DNA from: Fimbriosthenelais zetlandica
Taxonomy: Eukaryota
Assembly (NCBI GenBank): GCA_977030845.1
Contig: OZ365116.1
Coordinates: 18,476,001-18,540,000, forward strand
Direction: 5' to 3'
DNA: 64,000 nt
Shown here: one piece after another, positions 3,801 to 64,000 of the stretch
Numbering within the stretch: the first letter of the stretch is position 1
Layout of the letters: each line of letters starts with the position of its first letter
Made by a program: the position numbers and the translations under genes
The notes under the pieces: model-generated
Told to the model about the DNA's origin: nothing
Databases searched by the model: none
Seen by the model: only the letters and a program-made list of their open reading frames with translations

Positions 3801-6800
3801 ATGGATTATGGAGGAGATGAAGAAGGAGCAGGAGGGGGAGGGGGAGGTGGAGGAGGGATGTGGTCGTTAACTGGAGAACAAACCGATCTAGAATTCCTTC
3901 ATCAACAACAATTAGACGCTCTCGTCCCCCTCAAGGAAGACCTCTCAGACTGGCTCAATAAACTACTTGGTAATTATTTCATCTATTTTCTAACCTTCCC
4001 AATTTACCATTCTCATCTCAAGGTAGCTAAGATGGATGAGCTAGCCTACAGAGTGGGTTGGTTGCCCAGTTTCTGCCTTCCTGTAGGCCCCATGGGGACG
4101 TCATCTATTGCTTGGAATAAAGTATTAAGTTAACCGGTAATGCTCCCTGCTGGCGTCGTCCCTGTATTACCCCGGTATAATGGATTGGATCCTCTTTGGA
4201 AGTGACTGGCAACAACCAGTCATCTCACAATGATGGTTCACTGTGCTAAAATTACCTGGTCTTATTCTATACAATCATATTAATATCAGAGTTTGATCAT
4301 TTATTGTGTTTTGGACAACAAACCCCATGAACGTTCAGTTACTAAGGATTCACAAGAATGATCCTAATTGAAAAATGTACTTTAACATTGACTATAACCA
4401 ATATTTTCAGGTATTGATATCAATGAGGAGACGTTTATGGATGTACTAGATTCTGGTGTGCACGTCTGTAAATTAGCCAAACTGATACAGACGAACGCCG
4501 AGGCAGCTGTCAAGGAAGGGCGGGTCTTTGAGGTAAGAGCAATATTTACATCAACATCTCTTGAATTCTGTATCATATGATTCTTTTGGATCATAATTTG
4601 TTATTACCAAATGTTAATATTTTTCAGAGGCTATCAAAAACGAAACTGAGATTCAAGGAAAACGCTCGATCAGGGACATGGTTTGCACGAGACAACATCG
4701 CCAACTTCATCAAATGGTGCCGCGAGTACAAAATCAAGGAGGAATACATGTTTGAAACGGAAGGATTAGGTTAGTTTGTGAGAACTCATCCAATTCCTGG
4801 TTACATTTCATTTAAAACATACAAATCCAATATAAAAAATATAAAATGAAACATGATTCTAAAGTATTAAATCTCTGTTCTTTTCAGTGACACATTCCAC
4901 AGAGAGGAATTTCGTGCTATGTTTGTTTGAGCTTGGCCGCCTTGCCTACAAGTATGGTATGGAAGCACCAGCCCTGGTTGTCATGGAGAAAGAAATAGAC
5001 CGACTAGAACAAGGTTCTTGTTTTGGTGATGAAACGTTCACCTCAGAACAAGATGGCGGTATGTCAGGGAGAGACAGTCGTCCTCCCGCCCGCCGGGCGT
5101 CCATTAGTATTATGACAAACGGCTCGTCCTCAGAGAGCAGCTCTATAAGTACACTCACTGAGGCGCTCAGAGAAAGGTCAAAATCCAGGTCAAAATCCAG
5201 AAGTCCTGCTCAGAGGAGGAGATCCATCTCCTCTGTTGAAAATGACTCTATGATACCACTGTTTGTGGATACAAGAAGGCTGACTCCCAGCCCCAGGCGG
5301 AGGAGCCCCAGTCCAAAGAGGACCCCTAGTCCACGAGGTGGACCTAGTCCAAGGAGTAGTATACCAAGTCCTCGAAGTGGTATTCCTAGCCCAAGAGCTA
5401 CACCTAGTCCTAGAAGTAGTATACCTAGTCCTAGAAGTAGTTCTAGTCCAAGGCAAACGCCCAGTCCAAGACCAATGTCAGAGGCTTCTATTGAAACTAA
5501 TGGTGGCAGCCCTTCCCTGAAAAGGAGGAGTGCCACATACGGAACTAACACTTGTGATTTTAATGGTCAGGCATCGCCACGAAGACCACTGAGTTCCACT
5601 GGAGTGGGAACCGATACAAATGACTTTAATGGACGAAGTTCCCCAAGAGGATTGAGTTCCATTGGCATTGGTGCGGGGACTGATACTAGAGACTTTAATG
5701 GCCAGATGTCGCCACGTCCAAGAAGTTCCACGGGCACAGGAACTGATACAAATGACTTTAACGGGCAAATGCCTCGCAGGGGAAGGAGTTCCACTGGTAT
5801 AGGCACCGATACTTGTGATTTTAACGGACAAGTTTCACCCCGTGGGACCAGTTCCACCGGGACTGGTACTGATAGAGTGAATGGTACTGCAGTAGGCACT
5901 CTCACTGATGGTGACTATCAGGGTGAAAAAAGACAGTTAACTCTCAAATCTGATACCAATAGAAATAGCATAAGTGTGGGTACGAATGGTCCTCGGACAG
6001 TTGATACTGACACTAATGCTGGTATTGGTAATGGATACAGTGCAGTGGATGGTGCATATATGAATGGTGCTTCAACAGGGACTTCATCCCCGAAATCTGT
6101 GTGGAGAAGATCGTCCTCTCCTCACACTCCCAACACTAAAATACCCGTACCTACTGGAACCTCTGCTCATGGAACTCTCAGTCGTGGGGCGTCATCGAAT
6201 AGTATCAACTCATTAGGAACACCGATCAATGGGAACACGCCCAAGTCAGTGAGAAGGAGGTTCAGTTCAGCTGGAACTGGTAACTTCAATAGTGACAGTC
6301 CTAGAAGTGCCCTGTCTGGTACCAAAACACCGCGGCGTAGGTCCATGTCCAACAAGTCAGATAAGTCTGATGAACTGGACAAAGAGGTGAGAGTTCTAAT
6401 GATCAACTCAATGTTCTTATAAGATATCCAACTCCCCAAGTTTCTCAGTTCATGAGGTTTCTATATGTATCGAATTCTTTTTTAGGAAGAGGAACCACCC
6501 AGGAAAAAGGTTTGAGTAGTGCTGACTTTGTAGAATTTGACATTTAATTTGTTACTCTTTTGGTGTTGATATGTTACATGATCTTATATTTTATATTGCG
6601 TGAATCGGTTAGCTTTTCCTGGTGAATTGATACATCTTGATATGATATATAATATAGAAGTATGATTGACATTACATTCAAATGATTATTTATGAAATCT
6701 TATAAATTGAAATGATTGTGAACAAACGTAATATAAGTCTCCCTTCTCGTGTCTTCAGGTTCGCCGCATATCTGGAAGGTGCCAGTGCCCTCAGTGTTAT

Positions 6801-11231: not shown

Positions 11232-14200
11232 TCAAGCCCTAGCAGTTCTGTAATCAAACGCTGAACTTTGAGAGTTAACAGGTGGAACATCACCTTCAAT
11301 TTGCATATAAACCGGCTCCTCCTCATTGACATGACCATATAGTCCATTTCTATCCATGGCATACTCGAGTTCGGGCTCCAGAATAATATATGCACTGCCC
11401 TTCTCCCGGCTGGCAAAGCGATACAGACTGTTCGTGCTAATGCCGCCAGAAGATTCATTATATCTTCTTGGAAGATAATGTTGGTCCAGATTCTCCATGC
11501 TCAAACTGTTTTGACCCAATCGCCTGCGATTATCTGACATATAGGGCGAGCGTCGTGAATCGTGGCGTGGATCAAAGGTGTCCCTCATCTGAGGAGCAGT
11601 GTGGGCAGGGCTGACCGGGGACAGGTATGGATCCTCCTGTACAGGCATCCAGGGGTTAGTATGTGGATCCATGGAATGATCCTGACCTATAGACGTCAGG
11701 TCATCCATGCTGAGGCTGGTTCGAGGCAGGCCTCGCTTCGCTCTATTTATTTGGATATGTGGCCGGGGGATGTGATGTGGTACCCAATCCAAACTGACAT
11801 TAGGATGATGCAACCTTTCCAAGCTGTTGCTTGCTCCCATCCCAGTTTGGTAGACCCTCCCCAAATGATGGTTTGGCCTTTCTCCGCTATGGTAAGTGCG
11901 CTCCAAGCTGTTTGATGGCCGATCATCTCTGAATCGTTGTCGTTCTAAGCTGTGATTTTGCTGATAATAAGGTAACCTCTGCAAGCTTTGGATGGGTTCA
12001 TTTACTTTGTGACTAGGTCTGTCTAAGCTGTGATGATGAAAGTCCTCCATTTCATACCCCATCCTGGGCCTCTCTAGAGACCGGACAAGCCTCTCATCAG
12101 GCACCCTGACAAGCCTCTCATCAGGCATCATCTGAGGACTTTCATACTCAGGAGGAGGAAGGTTGAGTGGCTCATCAAACGGTCCTTCAGGATATGGGGG
12201 TAGAGGAGGAGTTTCACTTCTCTGGTATCTTTCATGGTCATTCCCCTGCTGTACATGCTCATACTCAGTGTGGTTTTCATAATAGGGCTCTCCTGATGTA
12301 TCAGTTATTGCCCCCTCCATAAAAGAACGGTGCTGGCGCTCTTGACCGGGAGTCTGGGTGGCCATAGGCGCTATAGGATAATCCATTTTCTGGTTCATCT
12401 CCTGGATGGGACTTGGATGTGTCATATCTGGCACTATTGCCTCTGGATGGCGGATGGCTGGGTCGTCCAGCTCCATGTACTGCTGTTCTGGAATGGCCTC
12501 CACCTCGTCTGGTAGAGGGGTGGTTATCTGGGGATTGATGTACTCCTGCGGCCGCCCCATTGGCTTGGGCGGGCTGATTGTTGGCCTTTTGTTGTTCTTC
12601 TTTGCTTGTTTTCTTGCGGCGTTCTTCTACAAAGGTTGAGAAATGATAGTGTTAAAATGGTACAAAGGTTTACAGAAAAGGGAAACTCTTAAATGTATAT
12701 AGATTGTATTATTCAATCATGGAATTGTTGGATAAATGTCAAAAATTAAAGGAAAAACACCAGTTGGAACTATTGCTTTGTAAAGGTTCCATATTTTATC
12801 ATTCACAAAATTAAATAAAATATGGATAGAAGGCAAAGCAATCTGAGAATGGCAGCGAACATATATGGGAAACAAATGATACACCATGCACTTGTCAGAG
12901 CTCATTCTTCCATGCTTCTATTTTGGACATCCTTTATACAGGCATACTTCTCACTGATAACTTCATAAAGAGAGATTTTGAGATGTTGAGAGACTAATAT
13001 TATCAGGCCTGACCTTCTAAGCATGAACATCACATACATAAAGATCGTATACAGAAACGATTGTTATAGCTTACTACCATGCAAAGTCATTGGTGCCTTT
13101 AACAACACCAAAGCAGACATGAAGGTCAGAACCTCTAAAGCAGCAGTCAGGTTGTTATTAAAGTTGTGACTATGGGGATCTTTGGCCATTGCTATGTATA
13201 TTGTATATATTATAAGAATGGTGAACGGCTCGGAAACAATTGCTGCTATGCAAGGTCAAGCAAGAAAATTGTACCGCAGAAGCAATGAGAAAAACTTTAC
13301 ATTATTAATTATTTTTTATTATATAATTTACCCTCGTCAGGTATCACTGGATAGCTAGGTTGTACTGGATTCTATGACGATACTGAACAATCATTTAACC
13401 AAAATTGAAGTAACAAAATTCATTATACTGCATACCAAGACCTTCATCCAGCAGTTTGAATATATTATGCCAAAATATCCAAAATTAAATCAAAATAATT
13501 TCCCCCATAAAAGAAGAATCCTGTTTATAACACAGTAGCACATATCAAGATTCCTGAAGTTATTATCGGTATTTAGTAATAGTTTATCACAACCGCAGCA
13601 AGTTTGATGAAGAGAGTAAGAAGTATTAATTAATGAGTGTGTTAATAAGAAGCATACCTTGTCCGATTTATTGGAACCAGCTGACTTACGTAGACTAGAA
13701 GATTGGCTTGATCGTGAACTGAAGCGTTCAACTACAGCCTGACGCATCTGTAAAAAATAAAGTTAGATTTTTACCCTTGGGAAAATATCCAGTGACTAAG
13801 ATGGGGATAATACGAGAGGATTGAAGAAATATCAATTTTTATTCGCAAAATGTTCATATCCAGCACTATGCAGCTCTGCTTACCTTTTTATTCAGCGCGC
13901 AATGGAAGAAGAATATAAAGAATCCCTGAAAGTAAAAAAAAAAAAGAGGTTAACCAAATTGTACTTCAGTATAACCTAGATCTAAGCTTTTAGGGTGTTT
14001 AAAACAATAACAAAGCTGAGAAACTGCTTTCCCTCTCTCTAGCAGAGGCTATTCAGGTAATCAAGTACTCCATCCTTCAATCAGTACTAGGAGTAGTATA
14101 ATTATAAACGTTTTTTTAAATGTCTGTACCTACCTGTAGAGAATTGCATACAGCAAAGATATATTGGAAGTATATTAATTTGTCATTCACTGAGAATATG

Positions 14201-17200
14201 CCAAACACCCAGGTTAAACCTAAGAGTGGCATCATCACTGCTATATTCCATATTGTTGCTCTGGAAAACAAATAGCAGTACATATTATGAGTTGAACGAC
14301 CTCATGCAAAGAACCCAAATTATCTATATGGGAAATGGAAGAGGTGCTGTCTAATTTACAGAATCTATACTTACTTCAGCCTATTCTTTTTCTCTGAGCC
14401 TTTCGATTTGGCAATCGTCCGAAGAATTACACATAGGATGCAGAAGTTGACCTGTAAATCAATTTCAGGGTATAATAGTTTGGGGGCTACTGTTTAAGAC
14501 TGGTACAAGAACCATTTATTGTTCAATGTTGAGTTATTTTGACCCTCCTGAATAAATATAGGCGTATAAAAAAACCCAGAGCTATATATTTAGTCACGAT
14601 GAAGCTATTTATAGGCCTACTTTGTTCTGGAATGTAATCAAAATTTGAATGACATGTTCCTGACAAATTATTAAGTATAGCCTACTTACAAGCACAACTA
14701 GAAGAGCAGGCCCAGCGAAGGCCGCTATTAGACCATTATCTTTTCTGAGCCAACAACTGCAATTATAAAAGACAAGTTTTTAGTTTAAAGCATGGAACCG
14801 TGAAATTAACATTTATTAGAGAATTTAATGTGTATGTGACTTTTTTACCAGTCCCGTCTTTTTATCATTGGTAATTAGATGACAGGGATGAGTGAGGAGG
14901 TATGAGGAATGATTTTCCTCTATCTAGGATACTCACTACTTGTCTGTACCGTAGCCTTCGCCCTTCGTAATGCTCAACGTAATGGCCACAATCACTGCTG
15001 GTAAGACTGAAAATATATGTTGGTAGACGTGTTTTATATGTGAAATGTTTCTTTAAAAACCTTCCAGAGAGTAAATTCTATGAATGTTTAGCTTGAATAA
15101 GAATTTCATAGTTGGTATAATATCTTCTCCTAAAAACTTTACTTACACCAACAAGTCAGTATTAAGAGGAATGTTTCCTTCTTTCGGCGGACATGGAAAA
15201 CTTGTACCACGTAGAGAATGAACTGTACGCCATCAGCGAACATCATAAAGAACGCTGCGAGGTAGAAAAAGTGAAGCAGCCCCGCTATGGCCATACAAAT
15301 CACCTGTAAAGGAAGGAAGTCATATATTACACACCCTTTAGCACACAAAACACTACTATAAATAGATATATTGTCTACATCTTTAATGTTAACATTTATT
15401 GATATAATTTAATTGATGATTTCTGATGTGTACTCACCCTAGTTTCTGTTCTGTTCACACCAGCCAGGAATATCGTATTGGCGATGATGAGCGCTATACA
15501 CAAGTTGATAAGCACTGCAGCGTGGTGGGACTTAACCCGTCTACAAATAAGACCATCATGTATTGATTAATATCACACAACCAATGACAGGTAAGATCTA
15601 TTTACAGATTTAATTAAATCATTTAATTTGATTTAACAATTGTTATTGAAGTTCAAGAAGTCACTTACTTCCATGAGAGAATGTAGAGAGATATTGTAAC
15701 GAACATTCCAAGAATTGAAAGCAGACATCCAATAACAGAAATAAGACTGAGAATTGTTTCATGCATTCCATCCTGTGGGAAGAAAAGGGACATAATACAT
15801 TATACTGAATCTGACCACCCTAGAGTGGACGGCGAAACAAATTCAAATAGGCTATTTAGGGTAAAGTGGGTTTGCTTTTTGAATCTAAAATTGATGCATG
15901 ATTCAGTAACATACCAGAGCATACGGGCTGATGAGAACCGCAAAGTTGGTGAGATGGTCACATGCGCAGACTGTGCCACTAGAGTTGTGATAGAGGACTT
16001 GACAACCCTTTTCAGACCAGAATCCGCCTCCTAAACTGTTGTACTCCCAGTATTTACACTCTGGACCTGCTTCGACAGTACTCTGAAAAAATCAGCAAAG
16101 TATAAGTCAATATTGAAGTTTGATTTATTCTGTACATTCATATATAGATTGAGTCTTGAATAGTAAGTAATATATTGAAAAGTTCAGAAACTTACATTGA
16201 GGGCTGAGAAGTGGAGATGGACTGGCGGTTTTAAATTCTTTCCTCGTGGTAGACCCTTAATGCTGCAAGACTGTACCCGGGAGTTGAAGAAGTCATCCCT
16301 GCAGAATAAATATCAAAAAATAGTAAGAAGTCTGGTTGATGAATATGTGAGAGAATATTGTCAAAAGCATACAAAAAAAGAGAAAAATATACCATACCTT
16401 CCACTAGGTAGGAAATCATTGATCGTATAGTACAGGGTACTCCAAATGGCGATCTTTTCTCCAGGAATGTCTGCGAATTAATTGAAATCGATGAATTATT
16501 TTTAAAGTTCGGAAGCATTCTAAATCATAAAACTCTTATCTTAATATATTTAGTATAGGGAATGGCGCTGTAGAAAAACATTAGTTACCTTCTGATAAGG
16601 ACTCTATTGTCTTTGCGTCCACGAGGACCTTGTCTGGAATCATACCTGATGGAACACCAGGTGGTGTTCTAGGTGTGAATTCTACATCGGCTTTGGTACC
16701 TTTGTATCTGGACTCAAGTTGGATTTCTGTTTGTGTCAAATACATGTATGTATAATGATATGTGATGGATAATTTGCTCTAAATGTTACAATAAAATTAG
16801 TAAAGAAAAGAGGCAACAGTTTCATCCTAAAATAAAAATCCATTACTTGTACATGCATAAGGCTCCTACATACCAAGGTTTGACACTGAGTATTGCATTT
16901 GACTTCCAGGAGGAACTTTCCTTGATGCCTGCTCAGCGATACGGTCCACAGATTTCATGAGCACGGAAGCGCGGCCGGGATGTCTCTGGAAACAAGGTAA
17001 AAAATAGTCAATTATGGAATTCTAAACATTAACATTAGGTTTAAGGAAATTAACAATATAATTATAGCCTCAATGTAGATACTGATCATCCAAAAAGGAG
17101 GCTGTAACTAGTATTAAGCTAATAACACTTACTTCTCGAATCGCCTCCCATCCTGGAGTATTCTTTTTTGAAAGAACGTTCCCAGCTGTGTTGACCAGCC

Positions 17201-20200
17201 TCTGTAAGAAATATACAAGATTTTAGAAGATCCCAGGTACTAGAAATATTTCCATATTAATCCCATTTTGAATTGACATATTTGTCTCAGACGGCACTAG
17301 CCGTATATGAGTTGACTTACCGTTGTCTGGGCATCACTAAAGTTAAAGTCCTGATCATGTGGGAGGCTGGTTAGAATATCCAGCGCTTCTAAGGTAGCAT
17401 TCAGATCGCCTCCACTCAGCCCGTTATCCGTTTCCACGTCCCTCCTAACCTTGTTGGTAAGCTCATTGACAGCATCCTCTACAGCGAATGACGGAACATC
17501 CACTTTGCCAGGTTCCTTCTTCACTTCTATATTCTGAGCCTACAATAGAATTGCCACTTTGTCAGTATCATTTTCCTGGATACCTTGATAAAGTAAAATC
17601 AATTATTACACTAATATATTGGGATATATGCTATATAGATGTACTTACACTCTCCAGTATCTTTTGGAAGTCCTCTGATACACACAGATTTACAGGTGGC
17701 CTCCAAGCAGGCTTCCCCCTTGTACCTTCTACGCATTTACGAACATAGGATCCTAAACAAATATATGGATGGTAATTATTTGAAAATTCAATATATGAAA
17801 ATTCAATATTCAAAATTCTTCTAGCAATCCTCCCAAGGATAGTGTTAACGAAATATACCAAATTTATACTAGTGTACCAAAAATACCAATGTTGATGCAC
17901 TTTACTGAAAAGGGACATTTGTTATATTGAAATTATTTAATAGGAATAGTAGATTATCATCACATTTCATTACCTGACAGTGGTGCACAACGTTGTTCTA
18001 TCTCTGTCCCCACTGGCGTTCGTTTCCAAAATTTACCATCAAACGTATCATCTTGGCAATACATGATTTTTGTATCTAATAGATAAATAGATTACATTTC
18101 AATATGTATTATTCAAATGCTTCGTGAGATATGAGTTATTCAAATCAAGCCTAGCTACCATAGTGTAGCTTTAAGTTAATGACATGTCATGTATTCTGTT
18201 CTTGGCCTTGAGTTAATTCCCTCTGGTAATACTGGGTGATATTTCAATCCAAGCAGTTGTTAAGGATTAGAGAAATCATTGTAAACCGCAAAAAAAAATA
18301 GAGCTTAAGGATCCCAGGGTATAGGGATTAAATGCACCAAGTAAGGCCATGAGGAATGAGAATAGAATAGCCACATTTAGGACTAGCCTCTATGCATTCG
18401 ATCTCTAGAGGAGAATCTAATGCAAGCATGATTGTTGAAATAGTAAAGAAAATATTTGGTAACAGCAGTGTTGCGCATACACCGTGATTAGCACCAACAG
18501 AGAAAAAAGTTGGCACAAGGATGAGTAGATTATTATCTTCAACATGCATGTGGAACATGCTGGAACACTTTACCTCATTACCTCAGCTCTCCCATCATTG
18601 GTGTGCTTTGTTCTGCTAATATCTCAAAGAAATCCTTTCACTCACTGAATCAAATCTTTTTGGCTCACTACTCTTCCCAAAAGGAACTATTGTTTACTAT
18701 TTTGAAATGATAACAGAACTGAACTCTGAAACACTGTCCTAAGGAATCCTTCATTTATTTATAGAATATGACCAATCATGCACTAATTAGCTACTATGTC
18801 ACTCATAATAATTTAACCTTTAATCAAGCCTTCTATCTTGAGGGAATGTTGTCTGTGACTCAAAGTATTTATAAATATCTCCTTAGTCATATATTAGTAT
18901 CAAAATGATTGGCAATTTGCTGCACCTATCACTACCATTCCTCTGATAAAACATGGACTGTTGTCAATGTTATTTTAACTGAAGCTTACCTACAGTAGAT
19001 GAAGGCACTACGGTTGCTGTAGTGGTAGCCGCATTCTCAGTTGTTGACAGATCAGTAGACCCAGTTGTAGCATTAGTAATTCCAGCCATTGGGGTAGGAG
19101 TTACAGTGACTGCATTATCAACGTCAGGAAAACTGGTTTCCTCCGTTGTTGCGTCAGTGGTTGTAACTGAAGCAGAAGCCTCACTAATATTAGTAATGGA
19201 AGGAGAATAGGAAACCATGGGCATATTAGTTGACTTATCCTTATTTATCAATGTTGAGAATGAGCTAATAGTTGAAGTATTCTCTTGTACTGTGGTTTTG
19301 GGTAAGGAAGAAGTTGAGAAAGTGGAAGAGGATAAGGTCGAAGACATAGTGGGACGGGATTCAGTAGTTGATGAGATATTGGGGGTAGGGCTATGGGGGG
19401 TTTGACTATCTGGTGAAGAAAGGGGAGTGGAATCAGGGCCTGCATCTGTAGTTGATACATAGATCGGCTCGTCTGTCACAGTGAACATGGTGGTGGGGGT
19501 TTCTGTTAGAGTGGGGGTGACAGTGGTTGATGTGACAGTGTCAGAGATAGAGGTACTTGATAGGGACAGAGGTGTACTATCAGATTCTGGTGTAGAAGTG
19601 CTTGATAGGGACAGAGGTGTACTATCAGATTCTGGTGTAGAAGTGCTTGATAGGGACAGAGGTGTACTCTCAGATTCTGGTGTAGAAGTGCTTGATAGGG
19701 ACAGAGGTGTACTCTCAGATTCTGGTGTAGAAGCAGAGTCTTGAGTGGTGGTGGGTTCTACAGAGGTGGGGGAAGAGGACAGAGTAGTGGAAGGCAAGTA
19801 AGCTAGTGTAGTAGAGGAAGGGTCTGTGAGCATAATTTGTTTACCAGTTGTGGACTGTGTAATCACAGAAGGTGATGTTGATATTTTTGTTGGTGTGACA
19901 GTTTCAGTTGGCATGGGGCTTGTAACAACCTGTGTGGTTGGGGACAAGGTTTCCTCATTGTTGGTAGTAGTAGTAGTACTAGCATTCATACCATCCTCAG
20001 ACCTAAGTGTTGTCTCAGTTGTTATAAGCGTTACACTTGTTAGGTTAGTGGGCTTTTGCGACTGAGATGTTGATGAAAAAATCTCTCCACCACTCGTGCT
20101 CGCGTCACTAATATTCTCAACACTTGTTGTACCTTTTCGTGGAGATGATGTCGTCGTTGACGGTGGCCCTGATTTAGTCATTGGTGTGCTGTTCTTAAAT

Positions 20201-22040
20201 ATACTAGTGGGTATACCTGTAGTTATGCGGGTTGTTGTGCGAGTGTTCTCATCTTGTTTTGCCGGTGTACTCGTTGGAGTACTTGGGCGCCAGGTCGAAC
20301 GAGTTTTTGTCGTCTTAGAAACAGATTTCCTAGTAGGTGTATTGGTATAGATAGTTGACGGAGTGGAACGTGTTGTAGTGGAAGGTGTAACGGCAGATGT
20401 TGTAGTGGAAGGTCTAGTAGTATCGGGAAATAGTGGCAGTTTATCTTTACCATTACATTTCAGCGTTATACATTCACCCTGAGTGTCATTGACGCAGCTA
20501 CATGTCTTTACGTCATAAAACGTACCACTAGCACAGGACCCTTGCATCCAGATATAACCTAAGCACATGAAATGTCTACGACAATCTGTTGGATGCAGAT
20601 GGGTTTGTAATGCAGTGTCAGCATTACAAGTACTGTGATTCCTCCTCGTCGGGGAGTTACACAGTGAGTCTATTGTCATATTCTTGGTGATATCCACACA
20701 GACTGGGTATGCAGGTTCAGGGATCTCAGGTGTGGTCGTCTCTGTAACATAGGGAATGGAAAATGTAGGTGAGGCTTGGACATGAGTGGACGAGCTCACA
20801 GGTGTTACACTTTCACATGGAGGTGTGCATTCATACGATTTGTTAGCTCGCATACATTGGTTGATTCTCCAGTCAAAAAAGGGCTGAGTTTCAGGACATT
20901 GACCCCTTGCCCAGAATGCCCCACCAAAGCATAGGTAAAAAGCAGAGCAGTCATTTGGATCTCCTATGACTTTTTGATTTAAGCAAGGCAGTGGTAAATT
21001 ACATTCAATGCGTGTGTTAGGCAGCGGTGATGCTGATGTTATTGGTGGAGCAGTAGGTGATTTACCTGGGCATGGTAGTTGGCAAGTAGCCTCATGTGTA
21101 TGGTTACATTTAAGGGTGAGAGAATCAAACCGGGTCCCAGGGCTACAGGGCCTTTTAATCCAACGGTTGAAGACGCATTCTTGATAAAAATTACAATTAG
21201 AAGGGTCTGGCATGAGTGTTTGACTGGAACAGTTGTGAGAACTGAGATTACAAACAGGGTCGTCGGGATTAGCAAATGGTCCTGTTTGAGATATTTGAGT
21301 TGTCACCGTGGTAGATCCATTACCTATGTCAGGATCAGGTATATCAGTTGTTGTTTCACTTTGCCTTGGTGGAGTTGGAGTTGGTACTTCATCTCTACAG
21401 GTATAACAGATGGCGGTAGGGTTTTGTGTACATGACATGGTCCGCACATCAAACTTTTCTCTTCTAGTACAGGTTTGGTTTTGCCACTGATTTTGCTTGC
21501 AACGTGAAAAGCTTCTGCAGTTCAACGGATCAGGGAATAGCTCTGAAAGGTTGCAAAGATCTGGCCGAGGTATGCAGAAGGTTATATTATCAAAACGCCT
21601 GGGGAGGGATGGCCTGTTGTTTCCTCTATTTCCTTGACCAGGAGGAGTCCATCCAGGAGGTCGACCCGGTGGTGTACCAGTATCGTCCTCGTCACCTCCA
21701 GGTACTCCTTGACCAGGTCTCGTGTTAGGCACCCCACCAGCCGCCTTACCAGCACCTTGCCCTTGGCCTTGTACCATTGATATCAAGCCTGCAAATGGAA
21801 AAAGATCATGCACAAGGACATTAATGTTGCCTCTTTAATATTATATTAGACATCGACTCGTGATAAAAACTGATCTCATATTGAGTGCCAGTCATGGTAG
21901 AAAATTAGAAATTGCAATTGTGGAATGATATTTATATGTATCTGTAGGCTTATCTGATATGAGACATTTCTGACATAGGCCTACTTACCAATAAGACAGA
22001 TGATGAAGACAATTCGTAACCCAGCTGATGATAAATCCAT
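11232..22040 (-). CDS. Adhesion GPCR (7tm_2 family) with four N-terminal chitin-binding type-2-like domains, mucin stalk, HormR and GAIN/GPS; ~2056 aa
   Basis: 21 GT-AG exons with matching phases: 22040-21989, 21788-18990, 18075-17974, 17752-17649, 17539-17321, 17201-17133, 16985-16874, 16726-16589, 16470-16398, 16298-16196, 16082-15915, 15772-15669, 15540-15438, 15303-15147, 15006-14937, 14756-14690, 14451-14375, 14260-14134, 13925-13884, 13747-13658, 12626-11232 (sum 6171 nt, divisible by 3). Motifs: signal peptide MDLSSAGLRIVFIICLIGLISMVQG; HormR YCQDDTFDGKFWKRTPVG..RC..G.Y.RKC..W.PP..C; GAIN LSGGDL..FNSRV..L.PPV; TM motifs LHFFYLAAFF, CWL..GLIAAFAGP, PLLGLTWVFG, NSLQGFFIFFFHC. Confidence 0.9.
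15915..16082 (-). CDS. GPS autoproteolysis exon of the adhesion GPCR
   Basis: Translates STVEAGPECKYWEYNSLGGGFWSEKGCQVLYHNSSGTVCACDHLTNFAVLISPYAL: canonical C.W..W...GC..C.C.HL/TNFAVL, with an intact H-L-T cleavage site and Stachel-like sequence. Confidence 0.95.
19559..19733 (-). repeat. 45-bp coding tandem repeat x4 in the mucin-like stalk (STPESE/DSTPLSLSST)
   Basis: tgatagggacagaggtgtact(a/c)tcagattctggtgtagaagtgct repeated four times, near-identical. Confidence 0.95.
20455..21580 (-). CDS. Four chitin-binding type-2 (CBM14/peritrophin-A)-like domains within exon 2 of the adhesion GPCR
   Basis: Four units matching C..(D/H)PxxCxxF/YxxC..W..C..G..F/YD..C..C, e.g. PDPSNCNFYQECVFNRWIKRPCSPGTRFDSLTLKC, separated by Thr/Pro-rich linkers. 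Confidence 0.85.
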
Positions 22041-62445: not shown

Positions 62446-62828
62446 TGAGCTGATAGCGCCCCGTACCACGACACCACCCGCGGCATAAGTGTGAACTATC
62501 GCTCAGTGCTAACTCTATGGAATAAGGGTTATCAACCCTTTTATCAAATATTCAGCAGTTGCCTAGCGTCAGACGCCATGTATGCAGGTTTATATACATT
62601 TTATCTATTCATATTATCGTATTTTGACTCCATCGAAGTGTATTTTCTCTCGGACAACACTCTTTGTATTATACTCCTTTTCGTCAGTGCGAATCCAACG
62701 AGAACAAATTTTAGGCAACATTTATAAAACATTTAGCCATTTGTATACCTCCAACTACATGAGTCAAGAGCGGGTCGTTTTAAGTCGGGCCAAAGACTCC
62801 CCGAGCCATAGAAACACAGACAGGATTT

Positions 62829-64000
62829 ACCGTGATACATGAGCCCTTGTTAATAGATTGATTATAAATTGATAGATTGTGTAACATATTAGACAGCTAA
62901 TATGTAAATATTTGGATAGCAGGTGGGCAGTGTAAAGAATCAGTGAAAAGTAAAGAAGGTATAGAAGGAAACAATCATAGGCCTACCACGCTCTGATTCT
63001 CATAAAATTTTAGATCTCAATTTTCTCCGTTGCTGGTGGATGAGCATCTAGGTCAGATTAAACCTAGGTTTTTCTGTGATATGAAGAATAAAATGAGACT
63101 CACACTCATCATGTGTTGTTGTGTATAGAGAACATCACCTACTCGGGATGTTTTACTCCATAGATTGGAGTGGGCTTCAGGCAGATATACATACCTATAC
63201 AATCAATGTACACACAATGAAGGAGGATAATTATGTAAGAATGCCTTGATATGATTCGAGTTTATATTTTCGATATATTCAGGGGGCGGGAAGTATGACT
63301 AGGGAAGGCATTTAAAATCATAATGAAATGATCCTCTATCGCTTCTTATTTCTGTGTTCCTGAAGTACCGATGACAACTCATAATAAAAGGACTACTTTA
63401 TATATATATTTGTTTGTGAATTTGTATGTTTCAGTAAGAAGTTAACAGCCTGATATCCAATATAAGTGAGAAGAGCATCATGGATTTATCATCAGCTGGG
63501 TTACGAACTGTCTTCATCATCTGTCTTATTTGTAAGTAGGCCTGTGTCAGAAATGTCTCATATCAGATAAGCCTACAGATACATATAAATATCATTCCAC
63601 AATTTCAATATATAATTTTCTACCACTCCGGCACTCAATATGAGATCGGTTTTTATCACGAGTCGATGTCTAATATAATATTAAAGAGGCAACATTAATG
63701 TCCTTGTGCATGATCTTTTTCATTTGCAGGCTTGATATCAATGGTACAAGGCCAAGGGCAAGGCGCTGGTAAGGCTGCTGGTGGGGTGCCTAACACGAGA
63801 CCTGGCCAAGGAGGTGACGACCCTAGCGCCATCTGGACCATTATATCTCAAACAGGACCATTTGCTGATCCCGACGACCCTGTTTGTAATCTCAGTCATC
63901 ACAACTGTTCCAGTCAAACACTCATGCCAGACCCTTCTAATTGTAATTTTTATCAAGAATGCGTCTTCAACCGTTGGATTAAAAGGCCCTGTATCCCTGG
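62829..64000 (+). other. Inverted, diverged segmental duplicate of ~21095-23149 (upstream region and exons 1-2 of the adhesion GPCR)
   Basis: Long reverse-complement identity, e.g. 62881 gtaacatattagacagctaatatg vs 23073-23097. The copy lacks ~22245-22745 and carries small indels. Confidence 0.95.
63480..64000 (+). CDS. 5' part of a paralog of the chitin-binding adhesion GPCR (or a truncated chitin-binding protein); runs off the window
   Basis: Exon 1 63480-63531 (MDLSSAGLRTVFIICLI, gtaagt donor). Exon 2 from 63730 stays open to the window end: LISMVQGQGQGAGKAAGGVPNTRPGQGGDDPSAIWTIISQTGPFADPDDPVCNLSHHNCSSQTLMPDPSNCNFYQECVFNRWIKRPCIP. Confidence 0.75.

Follow-up and report, generated by a model that had tools for sequence, protein, structure and literature searches.

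A probable single-gene reading of a Fimbriosthenelais zetlandica locus: a predicted adhesion G-protein-coupled receptor carrying four CBM14 modules on a mucin-like stalk

Can a tandem array of CBM14 modules and the seven-transmembrane (7TM) core of an adhesion G-protein-coupled receptor (GPCR) stand on one and the same polypeptide? The question is raised by a locus on the minus strand of contig OZ365116.1 of Fimbriosthenelais zetlandica (assembly GCA_977030845.1), in a window of 64,000 nucleotides that spans positions 18,476,001 to 18,540,000 of the contig. The window is animal DNA, with about 39% G+C and no ambiguous base (0 N). All coordinates below are those of the window, and features lie on the minus strand unless otherwise stated. 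The original prediction, made by a model from the letters of this window, had described here an adhesion GPCR with a chitin-binding ectodomain. Read from the genomic sequence alone, the interval 22040-11232 reasonably likely constitutes one compact gene of 21 exons for an adhesion GPCR of 2,056 amino acids, and the joining of CBM14 modules to a 7TM domain on a single polypeptide is probable.

The predicted gene can be read from 22040 to 11232 as a single unit, with a coding sequence of 6,171 nucleotides in which the only stop codon is the terminal one (11234-11232). All 20 introns of this model are bounded by GT and AG, with donor scores of 6-8 out of 9. The 19 exons that follow exon 2 were chained by splice-site scores and reading frame, and three of the acceptors in the model are still provisional (17539 or 17533; 16726 or 16645; 15006 or 14997). 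Most introns measure 99-238 nucleotides, the only long ones being intron 2 (914 nucleotides) and intron 20 (1,031 nucleotides); the short introns imply that the CBM14 half and the receptor half sit nearer to each other than neighbouring genes typically do. The predicted order of domains is a signal peptide, a Gly/Pro-rich tract, four CBM_14 modules, a stalk of 489 residues, an HRM-like domain, a GAIN region with its GPS motif, seven transmembrane (TM) segments and a cytoplasmic tail of 494 residues; scanned for hydropathy, the spliced model likewise shows seven TM segments besides the signal peptide. Exon 1 (21989..22040; 52 nucleotides) opens with an ATG at 22040 in a good Kozak context (A at -3, G at +4), encodes the hydrophobic core of the signal peptide and ends in a phase-1 donor (TTG/GTAAGT) that fits the acceptor TTTGCAG at 21788. 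Exon 2 (18990..21788; 2,799 nucleotides or 933 codons) supplies the end of the signal peptide, the Gly/Pro-rich tract, all four CBM_14 modules and the mucin stalk, and is contained in an open frame of 954 codons (21834-18973).

The architecture hangs on the junction across intron 2 (18076..18989), which has the donor GTAAGC and the acceptor TATTAG. Exon 2 ends with TAG/GTAAGC, its last base being 18990, and no stop codon precedes the donor; exon 3 begins at 18075 after TATTAG/ATA. Both sides of the intron are in phase 1, and the spliced junction is predicted to read ...SSTV-D-TKIMYC.... Reading past the donor meets a stop after six codons (18972-18970), and a stop shortly beyond the donor is common to the other internal exons of the gene as well. 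The motif GTAAG has a frequency of 0.0008 per base in the window and occurs twice in the 2.8-kb frame of exon 2, one of the two copies lying six codons before the frame closes; about 0.016 copies would be expected by chance in a stretch of 20 nucleotides, and only one third of these would have the right phase. A signal peptide is not encoded within exon 2 alone, so the CBM14 cassette depends on exon 1 for its secretion. Within intron 2 we found no credible signal-peptide exon that could serve the receptor half, so that exon 1 is the only such exon upstream of the HRM exon; the sole open reading frames with a hydrophobic start in the intron (18558 and 18545) were considered as an independent start for the receptor half and rejected for their poor donors. 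Poly(A)-like hexamers number two in the intron, as against 1.4 expected, which is the chance level. One gene is favoured because of this dependence of the cassette on exon 1, the phase-1 HRM exon, the placement of the donor and the chance-level frequency of the hexamers. An exact search of metagenome contigs returned neither the spliced 18990/18075 junction nor an exon-internal control, and the blank is uninformative, since the empty control indicates a collection without this animal. The limits of the gene, the openness of the 2.8-kb exon up to a canonical GTAAGC donor at 18989 and the phase-1 join to the exon at 18075 had all been put forward in the original prediction, and each of them holds.

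The first 470 residues of the exon 2 frame match the Pfam family CBM_14 in four stretches (E 1.8e-20). When the modules were scanned singly, all four exceeded the curated gathering score of the family, which is 22.1 bits, so that the earlier count of four CBM14-like domains stands. Module D1 (21388..21591) has eight cysteines with the family's spacing and scores 30.6 bits (E 3.8e-7); D2 (21061..21267) and D3 (20806..21018), also with eight cysteines each, score 35.2 and 24.2 bits respectively; and D4 (20446..20676), which has extra cysteine residues, scores 27.3 bits. The cysteines of each module follow the register C-x11-C-x5-C-x9/10-C-x12/13-C-x7/8-C, to which an outer pair is added, and all four retain the aromatic positions that are conserved in the family. 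Six cysteine columns are invariant in an alignment of 45 sequences, comprising D2, the other three modules and 41 segments of database relatives. D2, the only module that was folded, yielded an AlphaFold2 model with a mean predicted local distance difference test score (pLDDT) of 85.3. Every one of the top 14 Foldseek matches of this model in the PDB is a CBM14 structure, among them EHEP, the CBM14 domain of chitotriosidase (CHIT1), Avr4, tachycitin, Der p 23/Der f 23 and Blo t 12. The CBM14 fold of D2 is thereby confirmed at the level of the predicted structure. The closest solved relative of the modules is EHEP of Aplysia, both by sequence (E 7.2e-7) and as the best Foldseek match, with 33-36% identity.

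Between the modules and the receptor half lies the mucin-like stalk (18990..20442), which is contained in exon 2 except for its last few residues in exon 3. Its 489 residues in the spliced protein consist to 58% of Ser, Thr and Pro and include no cysteine, in agreement with the Ser/Thr mucin stalk proposed earlier; it has no Pfam match and is probably O-glycosylated. The stalk contains a tandem array (19548..19733) of 4.1 copies of a unit of 45 nucleotides, or 15 amino acids (STPESxSTPLSLSST-like), with 97% matches, which is likely to represent a length-polymorphic variable number tandem repeat of the mucin type.

The receptor half begins with an HRM-like domain encoded by exons 3 and 4 (18075-17974 and 17752-17649), in which four cysteines and the landmarks W, T..G, R.C and W can be recognized by eye. 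The two half-exons were scanned separately: the first matches positions 3-28 of the Pfam HRM profile (E 0.0067) with 17.2 bits, which is below the cut-off of 26.2 bits, and the second, whose landmarks were likewise read by eye, has no Pfam match when scanned alone. Searches of the PDB with each HRM half-exon gave no match. Exons 5-11 (15915..17539), the limits of which are partly provisional, encode about 280 residues between the HRM and the cleavage site, and the best family hint from scans of the separate exons is at E 0.18 (17201-17133). From its size, its position and the GPS that follows, this region can be provisionally assigned to the GAIN domain. Of the HormR and GAIN domains named in the original prediction, the former has a partial profile match together with its landmarks and the latter a provisional place, and neither attains family-level significance in these separate scans.

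The GPS motif (15936..16067) has four cysteines, two tryptophans and the H-L/T cleavage site, which falls between residues 1301 and 1302 of the model. Its exon matches the Pfam GPS profile over the full length (E 9.2e-16, positions 1-45 of 45), and the best solved match is human ADGRL3 (E 3.5e-11), with which the four cysteines, the two tryptophans and CxCxHL/TNFAVL are aligned. The Stachel (tethered-agonist) segment, TNFAVLISPYALD (15770..15950), is split by intron 11, and about 13 residues separate the cleavage site from TM1. Both the H-L/T and the T-x-F-x-x-L-(M/I) core are intact in the sequence. Autoproteolysis at the GPS and activation by a tethered agonist are putative. Exons 12-19 (13884..15769) encode the seven-helix domain, the last of them (13925-13884) contributing TM7. 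Four exon pieces match the Pfam 7tm_2 family with E-values from 1.3e-4 to 4.6e-6, and cover positions 28-70, 73-122, 142-187 and 202-246 of its 250; the TM1 and TM4 exons gave no family match when scanned alone. The second extracellular loop has the motif CW, TM6 the motif PLLGLTW and TM7 the motif NSLQG-FFIF. The best solved matches of the TM3 exon are ADGRL3 and ADGRL2, the TM6-7 exon is nearest to ADGRD1, and all solved matches are adhesion GPCRs. As judged from the profile pieces, the seven hydrophobic segments and these solved matches, the seven-helix domain is of the 7tm_2 (secretin/adhesion) type, as in an adhesion GPCR of class B2. An intact GPS of the form HL/TNFAVL and a complete 7TM domain had both been claimed for this locus, and both are borne out, the latter by profile coverage from position 28 to 246 and by the seven TM segments. 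Exons 20-21 (11232..13747) encode the cytoplasmic tail, which ends at the stop codon at 11234-11232. The 494 residues of the tail have no Pfam match and include a PPxY motif (PPEY), a cluster of several PxxP motifs, a duplicated PDERLVR and four (N)SLER repeats, all of which may be docking or phosphorylation motifs.

Database searches bear on whether such a combination has been encountered before. A HMMER scan of the CBM14 part against 1.84 billion representative proteins recovered 220 sequences at E <= 0.001, the best of them at E 1e-26 with 32% identity; this implies that the protein itself, and any relative with at least 50% identity, is absent from the library of representatives. Eight of the CBM14 relatives were scanned with Pfam and contained CBM_14 domains only. 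A word-indexed protein search with the CBM14 part had no match at E <= 0.001, a weak negative. A two-row alignment combining exon 2 with the GPS exon produced 7,725 candidates, none of them significant, which is a weak negative given the insensitive single-sequence profile of the CBM14 part and a length filter that left proteins of more than about 1,630 residues outside. In the ESM Atlas exon 2 retrieved CBM14 clusters only and the GPS exon GPS fragments only, again a weak negative. In the literature searched, there was no description of CBM14 or chitin-binding domains combined with a GAIN domain or an adhesion GPCR, which agrees with the earlier remark that the combination is not among the characterized adhesion GPCRs, and chitin is nowhere mentioned in the 2026 Pharmacological Reviews article on adhesion GPCRs, the 2019 reclassification paper or the 2025 eLife survey. 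The latter two describe the evolution of adhesion GPCR ectodomains by domain shuffling, and the existence of many unclassified invertebrate subfamilies. The novelty of the present locus would accordingly reside in CBM14 as a new ectodomain module of an adhesion GPCR of known type.

Several findings weigh against reading the locus as one gene for a chitin-tethered receptor. The evidence for HRM and GAIN comes from separately scanned exons; among the best 150 of the 220 CBM14 relatives none shows a GPS-like motif, resembles the GPS-7TM part or contains more than three hydrophobic segments; and EHEP, to which the modules are closest among solved structures, does not bind chitin. Moreover, intron 2 contains the poly(A)-like hexamers ATTAAA (18824) and AATAAA (18759), albeit at chance frequency, and exon 2 is symmetric (phase 1-1), so that a splice from exon 1 to exon 3 would be equally in frame without the cassette. 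Exons of this class leave the frame intact when they are inserted, duplicated or skipped, and isoforms may exist in which the receptor lacks the cassette or the mucin is secreted by itself. Carried further, the same features could mean that the locus makes two products, a secreted peritrophin-like mucin from exons 1 and 2 that ends at the stop at 18972-18970, six codons past the donor and ahead of both hexamers, and an HRM-GAIN-7TM receptor from exon 1 joined to exon 3, the fused form being absent or rare; it would also fit this that the proteins most similar to the cassette are without exception secreted, with CBM14 as their sole type of domain. We regard such a division as distinctly unlikely, for the GTAAGC donor coincides exactly with the close of the open frame and has the phase that the next exon requires, where chance would provide one only rarely, the hexamers are no more frequent than expected, and a stop soon after the donor is a property of all internal exons of the gene and not of exon 2 in particular. 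A different doubt attaches to the copy number of the locus. An inverted, head-to-head paralogue on the plus strand, 40 kb away (62828-64000), comprises the upstream region, exon 1, intron 1 and the start of exon 2 before it runs off the end of the window. Its identity is about 96% both in the exons and in the intron, which marks it as a young duplicate. Exon 1 is conserved in it, with a split codon at the exon-1 donor changed from Gly to Cys, and module D1 has been lost through in-frame deletions. As exons and intron are equally similar, there is no sign of constraint between the copies, and the intact-looking locus could be a silent or decaying duplicate that is unexpressed. This is very improbable when set against 2,056 codons distributed over 21 exons without a frame break and with every splice site intact, and the copy described here is the more complete of the two.

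If the CBM14 modules and the receptor are indeed fused, there is still the question of what the modules bind. The original prediction had taken chitin binding from membership in the family, a step that proves unsafe here. EHEP of Aplysia kurodai, built from three peritrophin-A domains, binds phlorotannin and has no chitin-binding activity; Der p 23 has the same fold, also without chitin-binding activity; and the residues critical for binding chitin differ among those CBM14 proteins that do bind it (PMC10619976). Given these non-binding members and the lack of conserved binding residues, membership in the family is insufficient to establish chitin binding in the present case. The fused receptor might hence use its CBM14-fold modules to recognize something else, such as polyphenols in the manner of EHEP, another glycan or a protein, and would in that case serve chemosensing or act as a cell-matrix receptor. 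The rank of EHEP as best solved relative in both sequence and structure speaks for this, as does the divergent eight-cysteine form of the modules, which score only 24-35 bits each. On the other side, most characterized CBM14 proteins bind chitin, chitin-binding proteins are present among the Foldseek matches of D2, and every module preserves the family's aromatic positions. Furthermore, the long Thr/Pro linkers suggest peritrophin-like beads on a string, unlike the compact three-domain pocket of EHEP. On this evidence a ligand other than chitin appears unlikely. Chitin is kept as the first-candidate ligand of the CBM14 array because of the behaviour of most characterized members and because the linkers are more peritrophin-like than akin to the EHEP pocket.

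For the fused, chitin-tethered receptor a sequence of events can be proposed from the predicted domains. The N-terminal fragment would be secreted and glycosylated, and the GAIN domain would cleave itself at HL/T. The CBM14 array might then tether the N-terminal fragment to a polymer or matrix outside the cell, chitin being the first candidate, while the long and presumably stiff stalk would hold the binding modules far from the membrane and pass on tension. Pull on the N-terminal fragment, its displacement or its loss would bare the TNFAVLI tethered agonist and so activate the 7TM domain and its G protein. A function as chitin-tethered mechanosensor or as sensor of foreign chitin is speculative. 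One particular form of it, in which the receptor is anchored to chitinous structures of the animal itself (chaetae, jaws, radula, shell matrix or gut lining, depending on the lophotrochozoan host) and converts strain or damage into a G-protein signal through the tethered agonist, is tentative, and as a specific proposal rather doubtful.

By current understanding, adhesion GPCRs sense force or contact through their ectodomains and, to our knowledge, most of them, those of invertebrates above all, are without an identified ligand. A peritrophin-like chitin-binding ectodomain would point to a defined, abundant ligand that is easily handled in experiments, as chitin beads or chito-oligosaccharides, and also to a class of extracellular matrix that has not yet been tied to GPCR signalling. 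Anchoring to the animal's own chitin, if true, would constitute the first direct link from chitin to a GPCR in animals. If the modules instead bind polyphenols as EHEP does, the protein would become a candidate chemosensor. The reading as a whole is a well-formed hypothesis drawn from one genome.

Comparison with known systems helps to place the predicted protein. The latrophilins (ADGRL; Cirl in Drosophila) share with it the predicted HRM-GAIN-7TM core, and the GPS and TM3 exons match ADGRL3, the latter also ADGRL2, but the rhamnose-binding lectin and olfactomedin domains of latrophilins are here replaced by the CBM14 array and the mucin stalk. As the TM6-7 exon is nearer to ADGRD1, the exon matches do not settle the placement in a subfamily. 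Latrophilins are activated by a tethered-agonist mechanism, and a mechanosensory role for them in Drosophila was reportedly described by Scholz in 2015. The EGF-TM7 receptors share the predicted design, with small disulfide-rich binding modules in tandem at the tip, a mucin stalk rich in Ser and Thr, a GAIN domain and a 7TM domain, and ADGRE5 is among the best solved matches of the GPS and TM exons. They differ in that their tip modules are EGF rather than CBM14 domains, whereas the present protein has a far longer stalk (489 residues) and an HRM-like domain. The peritrophins and CBM14 mucins resemble the N-terminal half: they contain tandem CBM14 modules with like cysteine spacing and Thr/Pro linkers, followed by a mucin domain, and the closest matches among the 1.84 billion representative proteins belong to this type. 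However, they are secreted and are without a membrane anchor or signalling part, and the extra outer cysteine pair in each module is a feature of the protein described here. EHEP (PDB 8IN3/8IN6), a polyphenol-binding protein of 25 kDa and the nearest solved relative in sequence and fold, is a small secreted digestive protein whose three modules are packed in a triangle around tannic acid, unlike the array predicted here.

The position of a single phase 1-1 exon between a signal-peptide exon and a latrophilin-like core suggests that the cassette was captured by exon shuffling or by fusion with a gene for a secreted CBM14 mucin. The locus would thus offer a clean example of the gain of domains through one symmetric exon.

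Two further regions of the window deserve mention. On the plus strand, an open frame of 511 codons (4887-6422) is rich in Ser, Arg and Pro, with SPR and SPSPR runs and five to six copies of G(T/I)GTDTxDFNGQ; no Pfam family matches this frame, which probably belongs, as a large exon, to a gene next to the receptor, downstream of its 3' end. Also on the plus strand, the segment 54851-55298 has a G+C content of 47% and contains overlapping open frames with Pro-rich repeats of the PLPNLSHS type.

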